Of a DNA stretch of 64,000 bases, positions 404 to 9,201 are shown piece after piece; positions within the stretch are counted from its first letter, which is position 1; the number at the start of each line of letters is the position of its first letter. The notes under the pieces were generated by a model. It was not told where the DNA came from. It did no database searches and worked only from the letters and a program-made list of their open reading frames with translations. The position numbers were made by a program, and so were the translations under genes. The DNA comes from Setoptus koraiensis (lineage: Eukaryota > Animalia > Arthropoda). Location of the stretch: NCBI GenBank assembly GCA_048013815.1, contig CM106586.1, positions 5,456,001 to 5,520,000 of the forward strand. The letters are read 5' to 3'.

Positions 404-3400
404 CTAATGGTTTCCATACTTAGAATTTATCAAAGGATTCTTGATAATCTTCTTCTGCGTGCTATCGTATATCTGTCTACAACAAAAAACAAGTTCTGGG
501 TTTACATCAGCTTTAGGTATTCTATCTTTTCGTGGATTTGTTAAAGGAGGAGCAACAAAGTAATCCATGGGCGAATTTGTCACGCCGACTTGCTCCATAC
601 GTGATCTTTTCCTATAGCGGCAATATTCGTTAAATGTTAAAACATAACACTTATCTTCGATGCACGCCACACTGTTAATGTCACGATGCCGTGAGGCAAA
701 GAGCTCGTCGGGTAAATGGTGGGGCTTCCTTCCCTCTTCCGTGTGTTCAGGTCTATAATACCAAAGTAGACTCATCATTATGCCTGCTAATAAAGAAAAT
801 AAGCATTGGTAATTGTTTAGTATTGAGCTGATTCACACCAAGTTTACAGTTTCAAGAACTTTAAATACTTACCGTCGTTAGGATCTTTCCAAAAATTGGT
901 AATCTTGGCGATAAACGGTAAGTCAGTTTTGCGAGCACCACTTCTCAGAAGAACACTATCCTTCGTCTTTATTATATCACCTTCTATATGCTTGATGGCC
1001 GGATAACAAAGTAGCTTCTGGATAGTAGATTCATTCTGAACGAATAGCATCAAAGATAAGATTAAAGAACTGATCGAAAACTATCCTTCAAGTATGTAGT
1101 AAAAAAAAATAAGTTGTAGAATTGACTTACGGTTAGATTGACAAATTTCTCTTCAGGTGTGCCTTGCAATGTCCATAATCCCTCCAAAGAGCGCTTCTTG
1201 AGAATTTTCTTCTGTGCCTTGCGAGTAGTCGGATCAGAACTCTCGGAAGGACTAGAAATATTGCTTGTGCCTGTTATCGCTTGCTGATTTTGGGATATAG
1301 GACTTCCAACAGAGGGGCTACTGTGAGACTTCGCAGACGAAGATGAGTCTTTGGATTGAGATTTGAGATGATTGACTGAAGATGAGGGTGAAGATGAAGA
1401 CGCGATCTGTGATGTCGCAACCATACTTGGAGTAACTGAACTAGAGTTTGTCGCCTCCGTTCTATCATTGAATGAAGCAACAGCCAAAAGACTAGTTTTT
1501 TCGGTGGCTCCAGAGCTAGGCGGAGCTGGTTTCCTAGCGGAGCTATTAGGCTCTCTATTAGCTCTCGGAGATGGAGTAGCGGCCGGCTTATTCGCACGAC
1601 GCTGTTCATGCTGAGATGTATCCTGAGATTTGCTAGATTTTTTGGTTACAGTAACTCCTTGCGATCTGTTTGAACGCTTCTTAGAAGATGATCCAGAATG
1701 AACACTGCCCGCTGCATGCGTTACTGGTACATCACTAATCAATGAAGATCCGTTGCCAACAGACCTTGTGGGGCTGGAGACGTTTACAGATGGTATCATC
1801 AAATTATGTGAGTTACAATAGGAATCCTGGACTTTATTTTGAGGATCAGTGCCCACAGAGAAGCCGACATCATTAGGACGAGGGTATAGAATAAGGTACG
1901 GTTGTTCGCTGATTCCTATCAAAGGAGGAACACCCAAGGTTTGCATAAATGAGTCTTGATAAGCTTGACTCTGGTTCATTGATGATGGAGGGTTAGGTCT
2001 TGATATCTGATAAGTTAAATTCTTACTAGAATTCCTAGGTATATGTGATGACCCCGCACCGTGCTGGTTCCCTGAGCTATCATAACTATAATATGGACTG
2101 TTGCTTCGCTGTCTTTCTAATGTATTTTGATAATGTGATTGACTCTGATTATTCATTGATGACCTCAGGTTACTTGGATCTGCAACAATTACTGAAGAAT
2201 CATTTGTGCTGTACGATTGATTATATAAGTTAGCAAATTGGTCGAATGATCGATTTGTGTCGCAGAACAGTTCACCAGCAACAGGTGAGGTTTTGATATG
2301 GAGGTTGTTTCTGTTACTCATGTGTTCAGGGGAGGGTTGAGGGTGAGCTTGATATGTCTCAGTCCAACCAGCCCTCTTATGTTCTTTGTTTGCTTGAATT
2401 AATGGTTGACTATATTGATTTGGTACTCTCTGGCTCTGAGCTGAAGAATTCTGATAAAAACCATAGAAGAAAGGGGAGGATGAAGACGGACTAAGCACGG
2501 AACTTGAGGGTGATTGCAAGGGTGTGACACTGGGAATGATGAATGCGTTTTGGTGCAATTGTGAACTTGAAGAGTTGGCTACATCAATCATTGGTATACT
2601 ATTACTATTTAAGGGCCCATCTACATAGGTTCTCTGTAGACTATGCATCTGTGGCTGCAAATGTTGGAGAGACCTGCTTAAAGAGGATGTAATGTTTGTT
2701 CCCATGGAAGTTGATGACTCCTGGGTACATGGATTCTGAATTTGTGTTGAACTACTATTATAAGCAGGACCTCGACCAGTATAAACACGACTAGAACTTG
2801 CTGGCATATTGGGAGCGATTTGCAGGGCATTCTGAATATGTTTGGGCGCTGTCTGAATCACCTGATCTTTAGCACGTCGGTGACAAACCTGACCCTCTCT
2901 ATTTTGCCCTCCAGAAGAAGTTCCTGATGCCTGATTGGTGAAAACTGCAGATGTATCATGTCCAGATGCGATTAAGGTAGATAACGGTTGACTTACAGTT
3001 GTCTGCAGTTCGACATGATAACTCTGACTTGTAGTTGCCTTGGTTCGATGGATTTTGATATGATGTTTCTCTTTTGAATGAATTGCTTTTTGCACTTGAA
3101 TGGTGGATGAATTTGAAGGGCTCGCACCTTTAGATCGAACGTCCTCGGTGGTATTTATTAGCACTTGTGTTACTTTGGGGACATGCACCGACGCATCGAT
3201 TGAGTCACAAATCCTCGATATCGGATCTATAATGAGGTCTGAATGAGTAGAATCTCGTTCGTCCAAAGTAATGTTCTTTGTGTCGCTTATGGAACGATTG
3301 TGCACTGAATCGAGAGTTCTATTTGCAACTTTTTTTTCTTGATTTTTTTCTAAATTTCGAATTTTAACTGATGGATCGATATCCTTTCTCGAGTATGTTC

Positions 3401-4658
3401 TGACTTCAACCATCTTCGAAGTTCCCTCGCTTGCAATGTGGTTCGGACTGCTTGTGGAGGTGTTGGACGTACATGAAATCTTCTCTGATTTTTTAAATGA
3501 ATTTATTAGAACCTTCTTGGGTGGATCAGGAGTTATAGATGTATTGCATGTTTTTACATTTTGTTGTTTCTTTTTTTCTTTCAAGTTCTTCAAGGCTGAC
3601 TCTTGCCTCAACAAAGCAGCTGGAGGACCATTACTAGAAACGATATAATCCGAGGTGCAGGTGGCGTGCATGAAGGCAGATGCATTTAGGTTTGCCTGGC
3701 GTTTGCACTTTTTTGTATCTATAATCTCAATATCATCGTGGGACGAGCGTTTGTTCTTCTGTATGCTAGATGCTGGGGTTACTTCTTTTCCTTTTTGAAG
3801 TCTCAGAGATGACTCAAGTTGATGCACGATAGAATTATTCGCTGACCTGACAGGTAGTGAACGAAGCTTCCTGACGTTTGTCTTAACATCTTCCGCTGAG
3901 TCTTCTTTTTTGCCGGGAGTTCTTGTCAGATCAGGAGTAGAAATACTTGGTTGTTGTTGTTTACAATTAGTATACCCGTCATCGTATAATAGATGAACTT
4001 TTGCTCTGGCATTCAAGCTCGCAACTCTCGAATGCCTACCACCAAGAGTTGATGTGGATGTTTTTGGGGCTGAATTTGGCCTTCGCCTATCTTTTGAGGA
4101 GACATTTTTCATGCATGTAGTTTCATGGTTGCCTTGATTTCTCGAAGATGTCCTCAGGTTTATATCAACATTACTAAGATCGTCTTTATTTACAGATGAA
4201 TTTGCGGAGGAAATAGATGAACGGGTCACACGAATCGATGGAGATTCGTCGGTAGAAGAGTCCGAAGTTGTGGGACCATTGTTGCTTTCTGCATGCTTTC
4301 TAGATGAATGAGATCGGCCGGTGTAGACCTTGTCATCTTGTTTCTGTTTTGTTGATAATGGTTCCGTTTTAATATTATTGGGTGTGATACTCTGAGGTCG
4401 GTTCCTGGGCCTTTGCAACTCGATTGTCTTGACAATAGCGATCGCCTTGGCCCGGCGAAGGGACCTTGAGGCATCTACAACATTCCGTGTTGGCTCTTTT
4501 GTCTGGAATCGTCGTTTTATATTAGATTTGCATATTGTTGTTGCTGGTTTAGTAGAGACCTTGTTAGATGATCCAGATGATTTTCGATCAATGACGCGTG
4601 GGCCTCCGCTCTGCCGTGAAAGAGCCTCTTCGGATGACCTGGCTCTCGTTTTGGCCAT
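404..4658 (-). CDS. BAHD1: BAH domain-containing chromatin protein, BAHD1-like (~1356 aa, 3 exons)
   Basis: Exons 4658-1131, 1035-873 and 783-404 join in frame through GT-AG introns (phases 0 and 1). The C-terminal BAH domain (DSVLLRSGARKTDLPFIAKITNFW...MMSLLWYYRPEH...ELFASRHRDINSVACIEDKCYVLTFNEYCR...PELVFCCRQIYD...IIKNP) closely follows vertebrate BAHD1. The RVASLNA motif is present in a long Ser/Gln-rich disordered N-terminus. Confidence 0.88.
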
Positions 4659-4810
4659 GGTAAATTTTGGAGGAACAGTCCTCCAAATTAAGACAATATG
4701 TTTGATATAATTTCTCTTTGATTATAGTTCTTGTGATATAACTTATAGGAATATGCAACTACATTTATATATGTATAATATATATTTATTTAACTGCATA
4801 TGTATCTATG

Positions 4811-4864
4811 TATATATATATATAGATTTATATATATATACCTATATATATATATATATATATA
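4811..4864. repeat. Interrupted (TA)n microsatellite cluster
   Basis: (TA)7, GATTTA, (TA)5, CC, (TA)11, directly upstream of BAHD1. The last tract with its flanks forms the palindrome ACC(TA)11GGT at 4840-4867. Confidence 0.9.
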
Positions 4865-5575
4865 GGTGTGTATGAATGTGTATAGATCTTTATACTCTTA
4901 TTTTTCACATTTGATAGGTTTCTTTAATATTGAGGTGCTACCGATGGAGCAATAGTGATAATAATAATTCAATATAATGATATCAATCTGATGTGTATAC
5001 ATAGAATAGTGCATAATAGTGGTGATAAAAACAATTTAATGCAGAGACTGCAGCTTATACACCATTTAAAATAACAAGGAATAGATGAAATGAAATTAGA
5101 CCAATTCTAGTGCAGTAGTCGCAAGCGCACACAGTTCTTTTATCCTTATTCTCTCTGGATGAAGAGAAACACGAAGGCTACAAAAGGTGGGAGTGAGAAG
5201 GAAAAAAAACATGAGCAGAGTGGGGGAGCAAAAGAGATAGGGAGATTTAGCGGGAGGCAAAAGGGAGAGAAAAAGCGCTTCTACACAACGCTGATCAGCA
5301 GATTTATAGGATGAACAGCAAAAGCGGCAACAACACAAATACACAGTTGATAGAATCGTGCTAACATTGATGCTCACAGCCCTACAAACAGAAAACAGTA
5401 TAAATAAATGTCAATGCCAAAGTCAGAGATAATAAGACAAAAAGAAAATCACTAATGTATAATTAATATTAAAGGCACTCTTAGAATCAAGGTCGTTTCC
5501 ACAAATATATATTATTACTATTTTCATTCATTCGATTCACATTAAGAAAATATGTAGAAATCACTTTTGGTCCCA

Positions 5576-7057
5576 CTACTTTCCTGTTGCTTTCTTACGA
5601 GCAACTTCATATCCTTCCATATCTATTGTGAGTCCCATTTCCTCACCTATCAATCTAGTCAGATCAACAGGGAAACCGTAGGTATCATACAATGTCCAAG
5701 CAACATTGCCAGGGATAACTTTGACATCGCCTTGCAAAGCATTGACAGCCTTCTCGAAGTATCTCTTGCCTCTAGTTAGTGTCTTGAGAAATTGTGTCTC
5801 CTCCTTATTGATCACATCCATAATGTGCTGGGTATCTTTTTTTACCTCGGGGAAAACATCGCCCAATAACTCAACGACCACATCAACTAACGAAGCAAAC
5901 ATACCAGGTTTGGCACCAAGTTTTTCCTGACAATAGCGAACAGCCCTACGCAGGATTCTTCTCAATACATATCCCTGTCCAGTGTTGCTAGGCATGCCAC
6001 CATCTGCTAGGGCAACAGTAAGTGTTCGAATGTGATCGGCGACAACGCGGTAAGCCATGTCGATACCGTCTACATCCTCTGGACCTATTTTGGCCGTATA
6101 TGGTCTACAAGATGTCCTTGTTTCAATAGCTTCAAATATTGGCGTAAAGACATCTGTGTCGTAATTAGAGGCTTTTTCTTGCATAACTGCAACCAATCTT
6201 TCAAATCCTGCACCGGTGTCGACATACTTCTTGGGGAGTGATTCCAGGGTTTGGTCGGGCTTCCTGTTATATTGAATAAATACTAGATTCCATATTTCTA
6301 TTACCTCAGGATCGTCTTGGTTCACTAAGGCCGCGGCGTCCCGCTGTCCAACCTTGTCGAAATGAAGTTCGGTACAGGGTCCACATGGTCCCGTGTCGCC
6401 CATCTCCCAAAAGTTGTCCTTCATACCAAAGGGCAAAACTCTCTCGGGTGGGACACCCAAGTCGAGCCACATTTGTTTACATTCTTCATCAGCTTCTAAT
6501 CCAGCTTTTTCATCACCACCGAAATAAGTGACATAAATACGTTCGGAGGGTAGCTTGTAGACTTGAGTTAGTAGCTCCCAAGCCCATGCACAAGCTTCCT
6601 TTTTGAAGTAGTCCCCAAATGACCAGTTGCCAAGCATTTCAAAGAATGTATGATGATAGGTATCTTTTCCCACATCATCCAGATCGTTATGCTTGCCACC
6701 AGCACGGATACATTTTTGCGAATTTGTGGCACGCTTGTAGGATGCCAATTCACTCTCAGGGTCTACTGTACCTAAGAATATTGGTTTAAACTAAATGTGA
6801 TATTGATGCAAAGCACATACAAAAATCGAGAAAAGTTAGATCGTGTCAGGTAGTTCTTAAATTACACCGGCAAAATGACAAATGGGGATAATTCGGGCGG
6901 TTGGTATTATATCTGTCTAACTTACTTGGTTCATGCCAGCATTGGCAAACAGTAGAGTTGGGTCATCTTTAGGGATGACAGGCGACGATGGGACGTGCTT
7001 ATGGTTTTTTTCGACGAAAAAATCAATGAATTGGCGTCTTATTGAAGTAGAATCCAT
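5576..7057 (-). CDS. AARS1: Cytosolic-type alanyl-tRNA synthetase, aminoacylation module only (448 aa, 2 exons)
   Basis: Exon 1 (7057-6926) reads [14 protein letters not shown]...[14 protein letters not shown], followed by a GTAAGT donor. Exon 2 (6790-5576) reads FKPIFLG...[19 protein letters not shown]...[15 protein letters not shown]...[14 protein letters not shown]...EIWNLVF...DTGAGFERL...[11 protein letters not shown]-like [14 protein letters not shown]...[12 protein letters not shown], then TAG after KKATGK. Confidence 0.93.
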
Positions 7058-7761
7058 TTCTTGTCTAATTGTCAATAATTAATTTGGATTAGAGATGATT
7101 CGAGTGTGGACTTTTTGTTAATCAATAAATAATATTGGGTGTTTATTGGTCAAGTCGGCCAGATGATTGAGGTTACGGCATTGATTAAATGGTGTGACGA
7201 GTGAATGGAGAGAGAAACGAAAAGAATATCCATATGCAAAGATACCATAGGGCTACCAACCGGGCTGGACCGGTTTTAAGTCACGCCCACTCGGGTATTC
7301 ACACACCTTCTGATAGGCTTGTGAACGTGGAATTATGATTCATGATAATGGACAGAAGCCATGTTTTACAGAGAGAGGAAAAAATGTGTATCATCAATTT
7401 CCGACCGGACACGGGCGGCACCATGCGCTCGGATATGCGATTGCCTCATTCACAAAGGCTTTGCCGATTTGGATGAAAATACCCTCTCCTGAAACACATA
7501 GCCACAAATGTATGGACGTTGTATAGAAATGTGCTCATTTGGGGCAACACAAACTGCACACGCATGCAACAGGAGATTTGCCGATTCCTATCCTCTCTGT
7601 TACACCATGAAAGGCGTAAAACACCGTTGGAATGCCTTAATATAATTGGATAATAAGACATACGATCCCTTGCTTTTGCTTCTGACCATTCTTATCTAAG
7701 TGGCTCGGTTTTTCAACACACAAGAACTCTACATTTTATTTAGCTAGTAATGAATTCGGTA

Positions 7762-9201
7762 TTATCCGATATTCTTGAATCTGTTGATGGTTTCGTCATC
7801 TAGACTGCCCTCTTTGGCCAGCATCTCCACCATATCAGCCCCTTTAGTTGCACCGGGATCAGATTGCATCTCCCTAGCGATGTTCTTCATTCTGTTTCTA
7901 AGCTCTGAATCATTGACAATCTCATCGATGGCCTGTAGGACCTCACGTTCCACGGGTCGAAACGGATCAAATCTTTTCCCGAATCCCTTATCTACTACCC
8001 TTTGGGCGTTGTCTATTTGATCGCCGAATGCTGGCATCACTATCATTGGACAACCAAAATAGAAGCATTCAGTAAGCGAATTGTTTCCTCCGTGTATGAT
8101 GGCCATATCCACTTGTGACAATGCCTCCAATTGAGGTAGAAACATTTTCCCCCACATATTTTCGGCCAATTCATACTGGTCCCCGTGGGAGCCTTTGGCA
8201 ACAATAAAAAAATGTTCGGATTTAGACAGAATGTCTACTAGACCCGTCATAAGGGCCACATCACCGCTTGCTAATGAGCCCATAGAGAAAAATATTAACT
8301 TCTTGCCTGATTTTCTTTTGGCCTCGATGATATTGTTCATGTCGCTTAATGTTACATCGCTTGTCTCGCAGCTACGTAATAATGAAGTGCATCTAATCCA
8401 ACGTTTCGGATAGACAAATCTCTCGTCGTAATCGACACACTTCGGAAACATGTACAAATTGAGATGGGGCGAATCGTGAGCCGTTGCAAAGGCGTCGCTC
8501 AATGGGGGGCATCCCATATTTTGCAGCCAAGCGTCCCAATCGGCACGCGATTGTTGTATTTTATCAGCAATGATACTCTTATGATTATTCCATTCTTGCT
8601 TGTGCTCTAGCCATATTTCTGGCTTATCATCAGTCGATTGTTTGTTTGGTATGGAGAAACCTGAAAATGCTGGTGGACTATCTTCATGGTTGTTCAATAA
8701 TGCTAGAGGATTTGCTGAGTAAACACGTACCCATGGCCTCTTGTTTGTAACTATGCAGGGTGGAATGAAGTAATTGTCAATAACAATGACGTGAGGATCA
8801 ATATTCTCGATGATTTCATTGTACTTATCATCGTAATGCTTGATTTCGTTAATCATGACTGAGTCAAACAAGTCGTTTGTACTTAGAAAAGCCTGGAGAG
8901 GAGGCATGCGAAAGTATTTGCGACATTTTTCCATTATTACTGGCCATTTTGATGCACCCGTATACACTTGATCATTATTTTCCCGGTCAATCCAAGCCTC
9001 CGTATCCTCGATAATAAACACCTCGTGACCTTGTTGTTGCACTGTTGGCATCAACATTGGACCCAGTACCACGAATGTAGTTTCGAAGCCACGTTGCTTC
9101 AATATATCGGCTATTCCCAACAAGGAATTTAAGTGACCTGGAGAATTCAGTGATGTAAAGAGCGCTCTAGGCTTCCTCTCTTTTTCAATTTTCGCCTCCA
9201 T
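7762..9201 (-). CDS. UDP-glycosyltransferase (GT1), cytosolic mite/bacterial type, 479 aa, intronless
   Basis: Catalytic His in NSPGHLN near the N-terminus, FFSMGS, and the UDP-sugar signature FLPQLEALSQVDMAIIHGGNNSLTECFYFGCPMIVMPAFGDQIDNA. There is no signal peptide and no C-terminal TM anchor. SPHLNLYMFP..DY resembles spider-mite UGTs. Confidence 0.92.
   Translation of the reverse strand: MEAKIEKERKPRALFTSLNSPGHLNSLLGIADILKQRGFETTFVVLGPMLMPTVQQQGHEVFIIEDTEAWIDRENNDQVYTGASKWPVIMEKCRKYFRMPPLQAFLSTNDLFDSVMINEIKHYDDKYNEIIENIDPHVIVIDNYFIPPCIVTNKRPWVRVYSANPLALLNNHEDSPPAFSGFSIPNKQSTDDKPEIWLEHKQEWNNHKSIIADKIQQSRADWDAWLQNMGCPPLSDAFATAHDSPHLNLYMFPKCVDYDERFVYPKRWIRCTSLLRSCETSDVTLSDMNNIIEAKRKSGKKLIFFSMGSLASGDVALMTGLVDILSKSEHFFIVAKGSHGDQYELAENMWGKMFLPQLEALSQVDMAIIHGGNNSLTECFYFGCPMIVMPAFGDQIDNAQRVVDKGFGKRFDPFRPVEREVLQAIDEIVNDSELRNRMKNIAREMQSDPGATKGADMVEMLAKEGSLDDETINRFKNIG

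Follow-up and report, generated by a model that had tools for sequence, protein, structure and literature searches.

Alanyl-tRNA synthetase (AlaRS) has a four-domain layout (domains for catalysis, tRNA recognition and editing, plus C-Ala) that is described as conserved "throughout its biology", and the named exceptions are the mini-AlaRS of Tupanvirus, the split enzyme of Nanoarchaeum, and a C-Ala-poor mitochondrial enzyme of nematodes. In this study we analyzed a stretch of 64,000 nucleotides (nt) of Setoptus koraiensis DNA (GCA_048013815.1, contig CM106586.1, positions 5,456,001 to 5,520,000), referred to here as the window and numbered from its first letter, which carries on its minus strand, at 7057-5576, a gene for a cytosolic-type AlaRS that stops after the tRNA-recognition subdomain and lacks both the editing and the C-Ala domains. 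We are highly confident that this mini-AlaRS is a real and functional gene that was truncated within its lineage. What is new is that a mini-AlaRS is encoded in the chromosomes of an animal lineage, as a cytosolic-type gene that is present across the clade and was found in at least seven related species; in the searchable literature we found no case from a mite or any other animal, the only cellular precedent there being the split enzyme of Nanoarchaeum, and AlaRS is not mentioned in the supplements to the Aculops lycopersici genome paper.

The Tupanvirus enzyme, TuAlaRS, is one of the closest described counterparts in design, being likewise of eukaryotic cytosolic-type origin, and it rescues a yeast ALA1 knockout, which shows that a mini-AlaRS supports growth (PMC10036535). 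By its domain content the mite protein is a natural mini-AlaRS of the Tupanvirus type, but it is encoded by a chromosomal gene of an animal clade rather than by a virus, and whereas TuAlaRS (at least 461 aa) has P321/T416 in place of the usual Asn/Asp pair and binds the acceptor stem tightly, the mite protein keeps N313/D413 and has undergone no shift in charge. The alpha/beta enzyme of Nanoarchaeum equitans (PMC11392972) is also cellular, comes from a streamlined genome and is not a single four-domain chain; both of its pieces are known, however, and are needed together, and its N-terminal piece falls short of an intact unit for catalysis and recognition (PMC10036535), whereas the N-terminal unit of the mite is complete and a second piece was found neither in the window, nor in 115 kb around its orthologues, nor in limited scans. 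In Caenorhabditis elegans mitochondrial AlaRS (PMC8887476), most of C-Ala has been lost from an animal AlaRS, but the editing domain is kept and the loss has been linked to a non-L-shaped mitochondrial tRNA-Ala, while the mite enzyme is cytosolic-type and without both domains. Laboratory fragments with nearly the same boundaries (5knn_A, 4xem_A; E. coli AlaRS N461 and 1-441) were engineered, whereas the mite truncation is natural and has been kept by selection. Free-standing AlaX/AARSD1 proteins, which clear Ser-tRNA-Ala and rescue editing-defective AlaRS, would supply the lost function in trans; their homology is to the missing part of the enzyme and not to the mite gene.

Results

Gene structure and catalytic competence of the mini-AlaRS

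The first of the two exons (7057-6926, minus strand) holds codons 1-44, running from the ATG to AAC CAA (..AGMNQ) at a GTAAGT donor, and is separated by a single phase-0 intron of 135 nt (6925-6791, GTAAGT .. TTTAG) from the second (6790-5576), which holds codons 45-448, with the class II catalytic core and the tRNA-recognition subdomain, and a TAG at 5578-5576. Read from the sequence, the spliced product has 448 residues. Another in-frame stop, a TGA at 5563-5561, follows after four further codons (W-D-Q-K), and the list of open reading frames (ORFs) contains neither an in-frame ATG nor a presequence upstream of the start.

Both exons match the Pfam family tRNA-synt_2c (PF01411), together spanning positions 2-424 of the 552 in the profile, with 58.7 bits for exon 1 (E 5e-16, positions 2-40) and 550.9 bits for exon 2 (E 4e-165) at a curated cut-off of 30.3. 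The exon-2 product aligns end to end and without large gaps with 5knn_A (chain residues 46-445 of 450, E 1e-196), and the mini-AlaRS ends three residues past the aligned end of this solved cytoplasmic AlaRS fragment. The same chain gave no Pfam match to the editing domain (tRNA_SAD, PF07973) or to C-Ala (DHHA1, PF02272), and tblastn of the window and of the surroundings of its orthologues gave none to the editing domain (E up to 0.1-10) and none to C-Ala. The original prediction, made from the letters of the window, of an intact two-exon catalytic half of a cytosolic-type AlaRS is thus borne out by the gene model, by Pfam, by the 5knn_A alignment and by the invariant residues described below; it was also right that a second in-frame stop lies shortly behind the first and that no mitochondrial presequence is present. 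Its further claim, that the protein ends exactly at a domain boundary, stands for the structural unit, since the cut falls at the end of the tRNA-recognition subdomain and of the crystallized fragment, but fails for the Pfam family model, which extends for 128 positions more, toward the editing domain.

Individual residues were mapped through an alignment with E. coli AlaS from the MG1655 record. E. coli R69, N212, D235 and G237, the active-site residues for Ala-AMP formation, correspond to R73, N212, D235 and G237 of the mite protein and are invariant in all eight eriophyoid sequences described in the next section. The same eight sequences keep N313/D413 (N303/D400 in E. coli, N317/D416 in human), an Asn/Asp pair defined as the reader of G3:U70 in tRNA-Ala (PMC10036535, PMC8583063). 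They also share three fixed replacements, R190K, H233Y and R316Q, at positions where R, H and R are 83-95% conserved in 41 other AlaRS; H233Y precedes the catalytic Asp235 by two residues, and R316Q follows Asn313, the reader of G3:U70, by three. A gain of positive charge, which a new mode of tRNA binding might bring as compensation, was looked for and not seen, the net charge of -14 (eriophyoid mean -13.9) being ordinary beside the N-halves of other AlaRS (mean -12.2, standard deviation 4.6). A known high-fidelity substitution is likewise absent: changes at L219 (L219M) or V204 of Methylomonas AlaRS abolish the misactivation of serine, and the equivalent residues here, L229 and V214, are unchanged. 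As judged from its sequence, the mini-AlaRS is a complete aminoacylation and tRNA-recognition unit, and it is predicted to charge tRNA-Ala.

Conservation of the truncated end across eriophyoid mites

The protein searches were limited in length, such that proteins longer than 1.75 times the query were invisible to them and a full-length eriophyoid AlaRS would be missed. The best matches were an ORF of a Logan assembly at 97% identity, two clusters of 448 aa at 82-83% identity, one of them holding a 447-aa UniRef entry of Aceria tosichella, and a 455-aa protein of Fragariocoptes setiger. Both named species are eriophyoid mites, which makes an eriophyoid gall or rust mite the most likely source of the window. 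Genomes in this group are streamlined and divided among few, tiny chromosomes (PMC7738191). The orthologue in the 97% relative (L002) has two exons, with a 128-nt intron at the same position, and stands in the order UDPGT-AlaRS-long ORF (1206 aa). Intronless orthologues were found in the F. setiger genome (L001, GCA_019968535.1), in two further Logan assemblies (L003, L004), in a species represented in ENA, JGI and Logan data (L005-L007; the orthologue of L006 being intronless) and in another JGI metagenome (L008).

All seven coding sequences, i.e. that of the window and those of six lineages with DNA, are open throughout and end at one and the same alignment column, ..AR(K/R)KA(T/R)GK, and the A. 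tosichella protein, the eighth sequence, has the same C-terminal end. The stop codon at this shared position is TAG, TAA or TGA depending on the lineage, and read-through would add, at seven orthologous loci, peptides of 4-34 residues that bear no relation to one another. The downstream neighbor varies as well, being a BAH-domain gene in the window and convergent genes 113-150 nt past the stop in L004, in L005-L007 (where it encodes a protein kinase) and in L008. One orthologue, L004:245-1672, has Trp in place of the usual start Met; its ORF begins 28 codons farther upstream, so that the product, of 475 aa, carries a non-basic extension, and it closes at the same stop.

Between the window and L002 we obtained, by the Nei-Gojobori method, a nonsynonymous rate (dN) of 0.013 and a synonymous rate (dS) of 0.63, and hence a dN/dS of 0.020; in all other pairs the proportion of synonymous differences was 0.78-0.93, which is saturated, and dN was 0.05-0.15. 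The spacer past the stop is 74% identical between the same two genomes, versus 89.5% for exon 2. Independent sequencing runs contain 96-100% of the sampled 31-mers over the region, including all of those sampled across 5300-6790. The mini-AlaRS has been intact, and under strong purifying selection, since before the split of the sampled eriophyoid lineages.

Search for the editing and C-Ala half

Eight full-length eukaryotic AlaRS, drawn from an exhaustive representative search, were compared with both strands of the window by tblastn at E up to 10, and the matches were confined to their residues 1 to about 450, at 7063-5588. The 917-nt flank that follows the gene (4659-5575, minus strand) has AlaRS-like coding in no frame. 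Hidden downstream exons were found neither in the 5.5 kb that remain in the window nor in about 10 kb past the stop in the syntenic relative L002, and twelve AlaRS C-halves (tblastn, E 0.1) had no match either in the window or within the 115 kb surrounding the eight orthologous loci. Beyond these loci, a scan of metagenomes with an alignment of twelve C-halves gave more than 599 matches, the best 80 of which included none from the JGI metagenomes 3300027033 and 3300061473, both known holders of eriophyoid contigs. Among the best 120 matches of a protein search with the Halotydeus C-half there was no named eriophyoid, and among the best 120 of a search with a nematode C-half no stand-alone C-half of a tylenchid or an eriophyoid, both sets being filled by other animals. 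A search of the ESM Atlas gave bacterial fragment clusters only.

Several candidates from these searches were rejected upon inspection. Apparent stand-alone C-halves of 438-467 aa are the last exons of ordinary multi-exon AlaRS genes, matches of 490-540 aa start at arbitrary positions, and short cluster representatives (456-541 aa), considered as possible eriophyoid paralogues, bear the names of fungi, nematodes, a sea spider and metagenome fragments. The top C-half match, P0296, is the second ORF of a frameshifted, intronless, full-length gene on a contig of 3x coverage. This gene, at L096:3065-5957 on a metagenome contig whose name gives the 3x coverage, is read as two ORFs overlapping by 44 nt, most likely through a sequencing frameshift, and it illustrates one way in which a spurious "split AlaRS" comes about.

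Evolutionary origin and parallel cases

In a maximum-likelihood tree of 49 N-halves, the eight eriophyoid sequences form one clade (Shimodaira-Hasegawa-like approximate likelihood ratio support, SH-aLRT, 100) on a long stem, and this clade lies inside the metazoan cytosolic AlaRS, which means that the gene originated through truncation of the ordinary animal enzyme within the eriophyoid lineage and not through transfer from a virus. Among other acariform mites, the AlaRS of Halotydeus destructor is full-length (976 aa) and a Sarcoptes fragment keeps the C-half. A further intronless gene for a 448-aa AlaRS, P0169 (Logan SRR29058810, a contig of 9218 nt, gene at 4347-5693), encodes a protein 68% identical to that of the window. 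Its end and the eriophyoid stop are one residue apart, and a convergent gene, EnY2, lies 189 nt downstream. P0169 keeps the ancestral R190, H233 and R316 and is placed outside the eriophyoid clade in the tree, while the approximately unbiased (AU) test does not reject joining the two (p 0.255); P0169 is a deep relative, or else a truncation that came about independently.

Short AlaRS genes were also seen in nematodes. In Ditylenchus destructor (497 aa, L094:8001-10600) and Meloidogyne graminicola (480 aa, L095:8001-10122), homology to AlaRS ends at residue 448-455; the genes are multi-exon and cytosolic-type, unrelated genes follow them, and no C-half exons were found within 8 kb. Short AlaRS models of 458-500 aa are annotated in Aphelenchoides, Acrobeloides, Panagrolaimus and Panagrellus, and the short AlaRS of the tylenchid plant-parasitic nematodes may represent a convergent truncation.

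Discussion

We propose that the mini-AlaRS is a functioning enzyme of cytosolic type that charges tRNA with alanine in an eriophyoid mite and has been cut down by an old truncation. It would charge tRNA-Ala through the acceptor stem alone, which is plausible given that human C-Ala has been reported to be dispensable for aminoacylation and that N-terminal fragments of this size are active. The clearance of Ser- and Gly-tRNA-Ala may then have passed to free-standing factors, namely a deacylase of the AlaX/AARSD1 type and, for Gly, DTD, or may have been largely abandoned; AlaXp proteins and DTD are known to deacylate Ser- and Gly-tRNA-Ala in trans. That the missing half has been lost outright, with or without trans-editors, has in our judgment a slightly better than even chance of being correct. 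Several observations weigh against it. In mice, even mild defects of AlaRS editing are severely harmful, and a full loss of editing of the AlaRS type would therefore be surprising. The mini-AlaRS carries no known fidelity-raising substitution at the Methylomonas L219 and V204 equivalents that were checked. Transcript support is limited to one probable RNA run, with two short contigs inside exon 2, and expression in Aceria would follow from a UniRef entry that appears to come from a published transcriptome. Lastly, our searches covered the window, 115 kb around its orthologues and the best matches of wider scans, and a stand-alone C-half gene or a full-length AlaRS may be present elsewhere in the genome.

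Two alternatives accept the gene as genuine and place the absent domains elsewhere in the genome. The enzyme could be split as in N. equitans, with the editing and C-Ala half encoded by a separate gene and acting either bound non-covalently to the mini-AlaRS or freely, as a trans-editor. A cut as clean as the one observed, at a domain boundary, fits such a history, as does the heavy selection under which editing normally stands, and a functional split enzyme is known (PMC11392972). Nevertheless, no C-half was found in cis, although the window and the 115 kb around the eight orthologous loci cover varied neighbors, and neither the best 120 matches of two protein searches nor the best 80 metagenome loci included a C-half from an eriophyoid, a weak argument given that these sets were filled by other taxa; moreover, fission needs a new promoter and a new start codon and is rarer than truncation. 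We regard a split enzyme as a serious but unlikely contender and moderately favor outright loss of the C-half over it. Less probable still, and in our opinion improbable, is that a full-length AlaRS elsewhere does the charging and that the truncated copy is a specialized paralogue, with a role in acyl-adenylate formation or lactyl transfer, or as extra charging capacity. Animals usually carry two AlaRS genes. Lactyltransferase activity has been reported for the AlaRS catalytic domain (PMC12143591), a full-length eriophyoid enzyme would lie beyond the length limit of the protein searches, and similar short genes occur in nematodes; against this, the mini-AlaRS has a slowly evolving, orthologue-like cytosolic sequence with a dN/dS of 0.02 and has kept its tRNA-reading residues, which fits tRNA charging, and the Aceria and F. 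setiger entries that match an N-half query are of the truncated form.

The remaining explanations would make the short end only apparent. The donor-like GTAAGA at 5598 leaves some room for an incomplete gene model, in which long-range splicing from near 5598 would reach exons far downstream, past the BAH-domain gene or the edge of the window. We consider this very improbable. Splicing from this donor (GT at 5598-5597) to the AG ending at 5382 reads R-L-stop, just as the original prediction had it for the best alternative splice, and the space that further C-half exons would need is taken up by the next downstream gene, on the same strand, from 4658 to about 404, with a first exon of 1198 codons (ORF 4658-1062) and short 3' exons. 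A Pfam BAH domain in its last exon (778-407, E 1.8e-11) makes the label BAHD1, given to this gene beforehand, a reasonable one. In L002, about 5 kb past the long ORF contain ADH genes on the opposite strand and nothing homologous to AlaRS; in four other lineages (P0169 included, at 189 nt) a convergent gene lies 113-189 nt past the stop; all lineages conserve, at the protein level, the codons from the putative donor to the stop; and eriophyoid genes contain few introns, which are short. An assembly error or a recent nonsense mutation at 5578-5576, i.e. an artefact or a young pseudogene, is excluded by the stop shared across species (at the same codon position in seven other lineages, of which the six with DNA use TAG, TAA or TGA), by the intact frame and its low dN/dS, and by the support from 31-mers in independent runs; nothing was found in favor of it, and we give it a negligible chance. 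The claims that the gene is no pseudogene and that no AlaRS-like coding follows it are accordingly upheld, and two of the circumstances named in advance as able to overturn the prediction were not encountered, since independent assemblies and the sampled 31-mers agree across position 5575 and the downstream sequence searched here and in L002 contains no hidden exons.

An AlaRS cut short in this way breaks the rule that, in cells, the proofreading and C-terminal domains share one chain with the rest of the enzyme, and it does so in a synthetase for which failures of editing rank with the most damaging mistranslation lesions known from animals. An animal clade with the charging half only would be a natural experiment on how much AlaRS proofreading a metazoan needs, and such a system can show whether free-standing AlaX or DTD carries the full editing load, or whether the catalytic domain evolves a better rejection of serine. 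A bolder form of this idea, which we hold to be somewhat less likely than not, is that no AlaRS editing domain or C-Ala exists anywhere in eriophyoid genomes, the cytosolic and the mitochondrial AlaRS both being bare aminoacylation domains, and that tylenchids may share this state independently. If so, an animal clade decodes alanine either with trans-editing only (AlaX/AARSD1, DTD) or with raised and tolerated errors of Ser or Gly for Ala, which the replacements R190K, H233Y and R316Q might help to offset. The finding also bears on how far genome streamlining trims the core translation machinery, and it means that the AlaRS of agricultural pest mites is structurally distinct from the enzymes of host and mammal.

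Other features of the window

The spacer between the AlaRS and BAH-domain genes contains a TA-rich simple repeat at approximately 4795-4878. Three large RNA-seq runs, whose species label is shared with DNA runs that contain this sequence, gave zero reads over two adjacent genes (1401-7300, 5.9 kb), and the label may refer to another organism, e.g. the host plant. Scans of the window for bacterial promoters and terminators and for tRNAs were empty or irrelevant. The upstream neighbor of the mini-AlaRS is an intronless gene on the same minus strand (7762-9201) for a UDP-glycosyltransferase of 479 aa, which matches the Pfam models UDPGT, EryCIII-like_C and the C-terminal model of Glyco_tran_28, and which has a syntenic counterpart in the close relative at L002:7561-9003.

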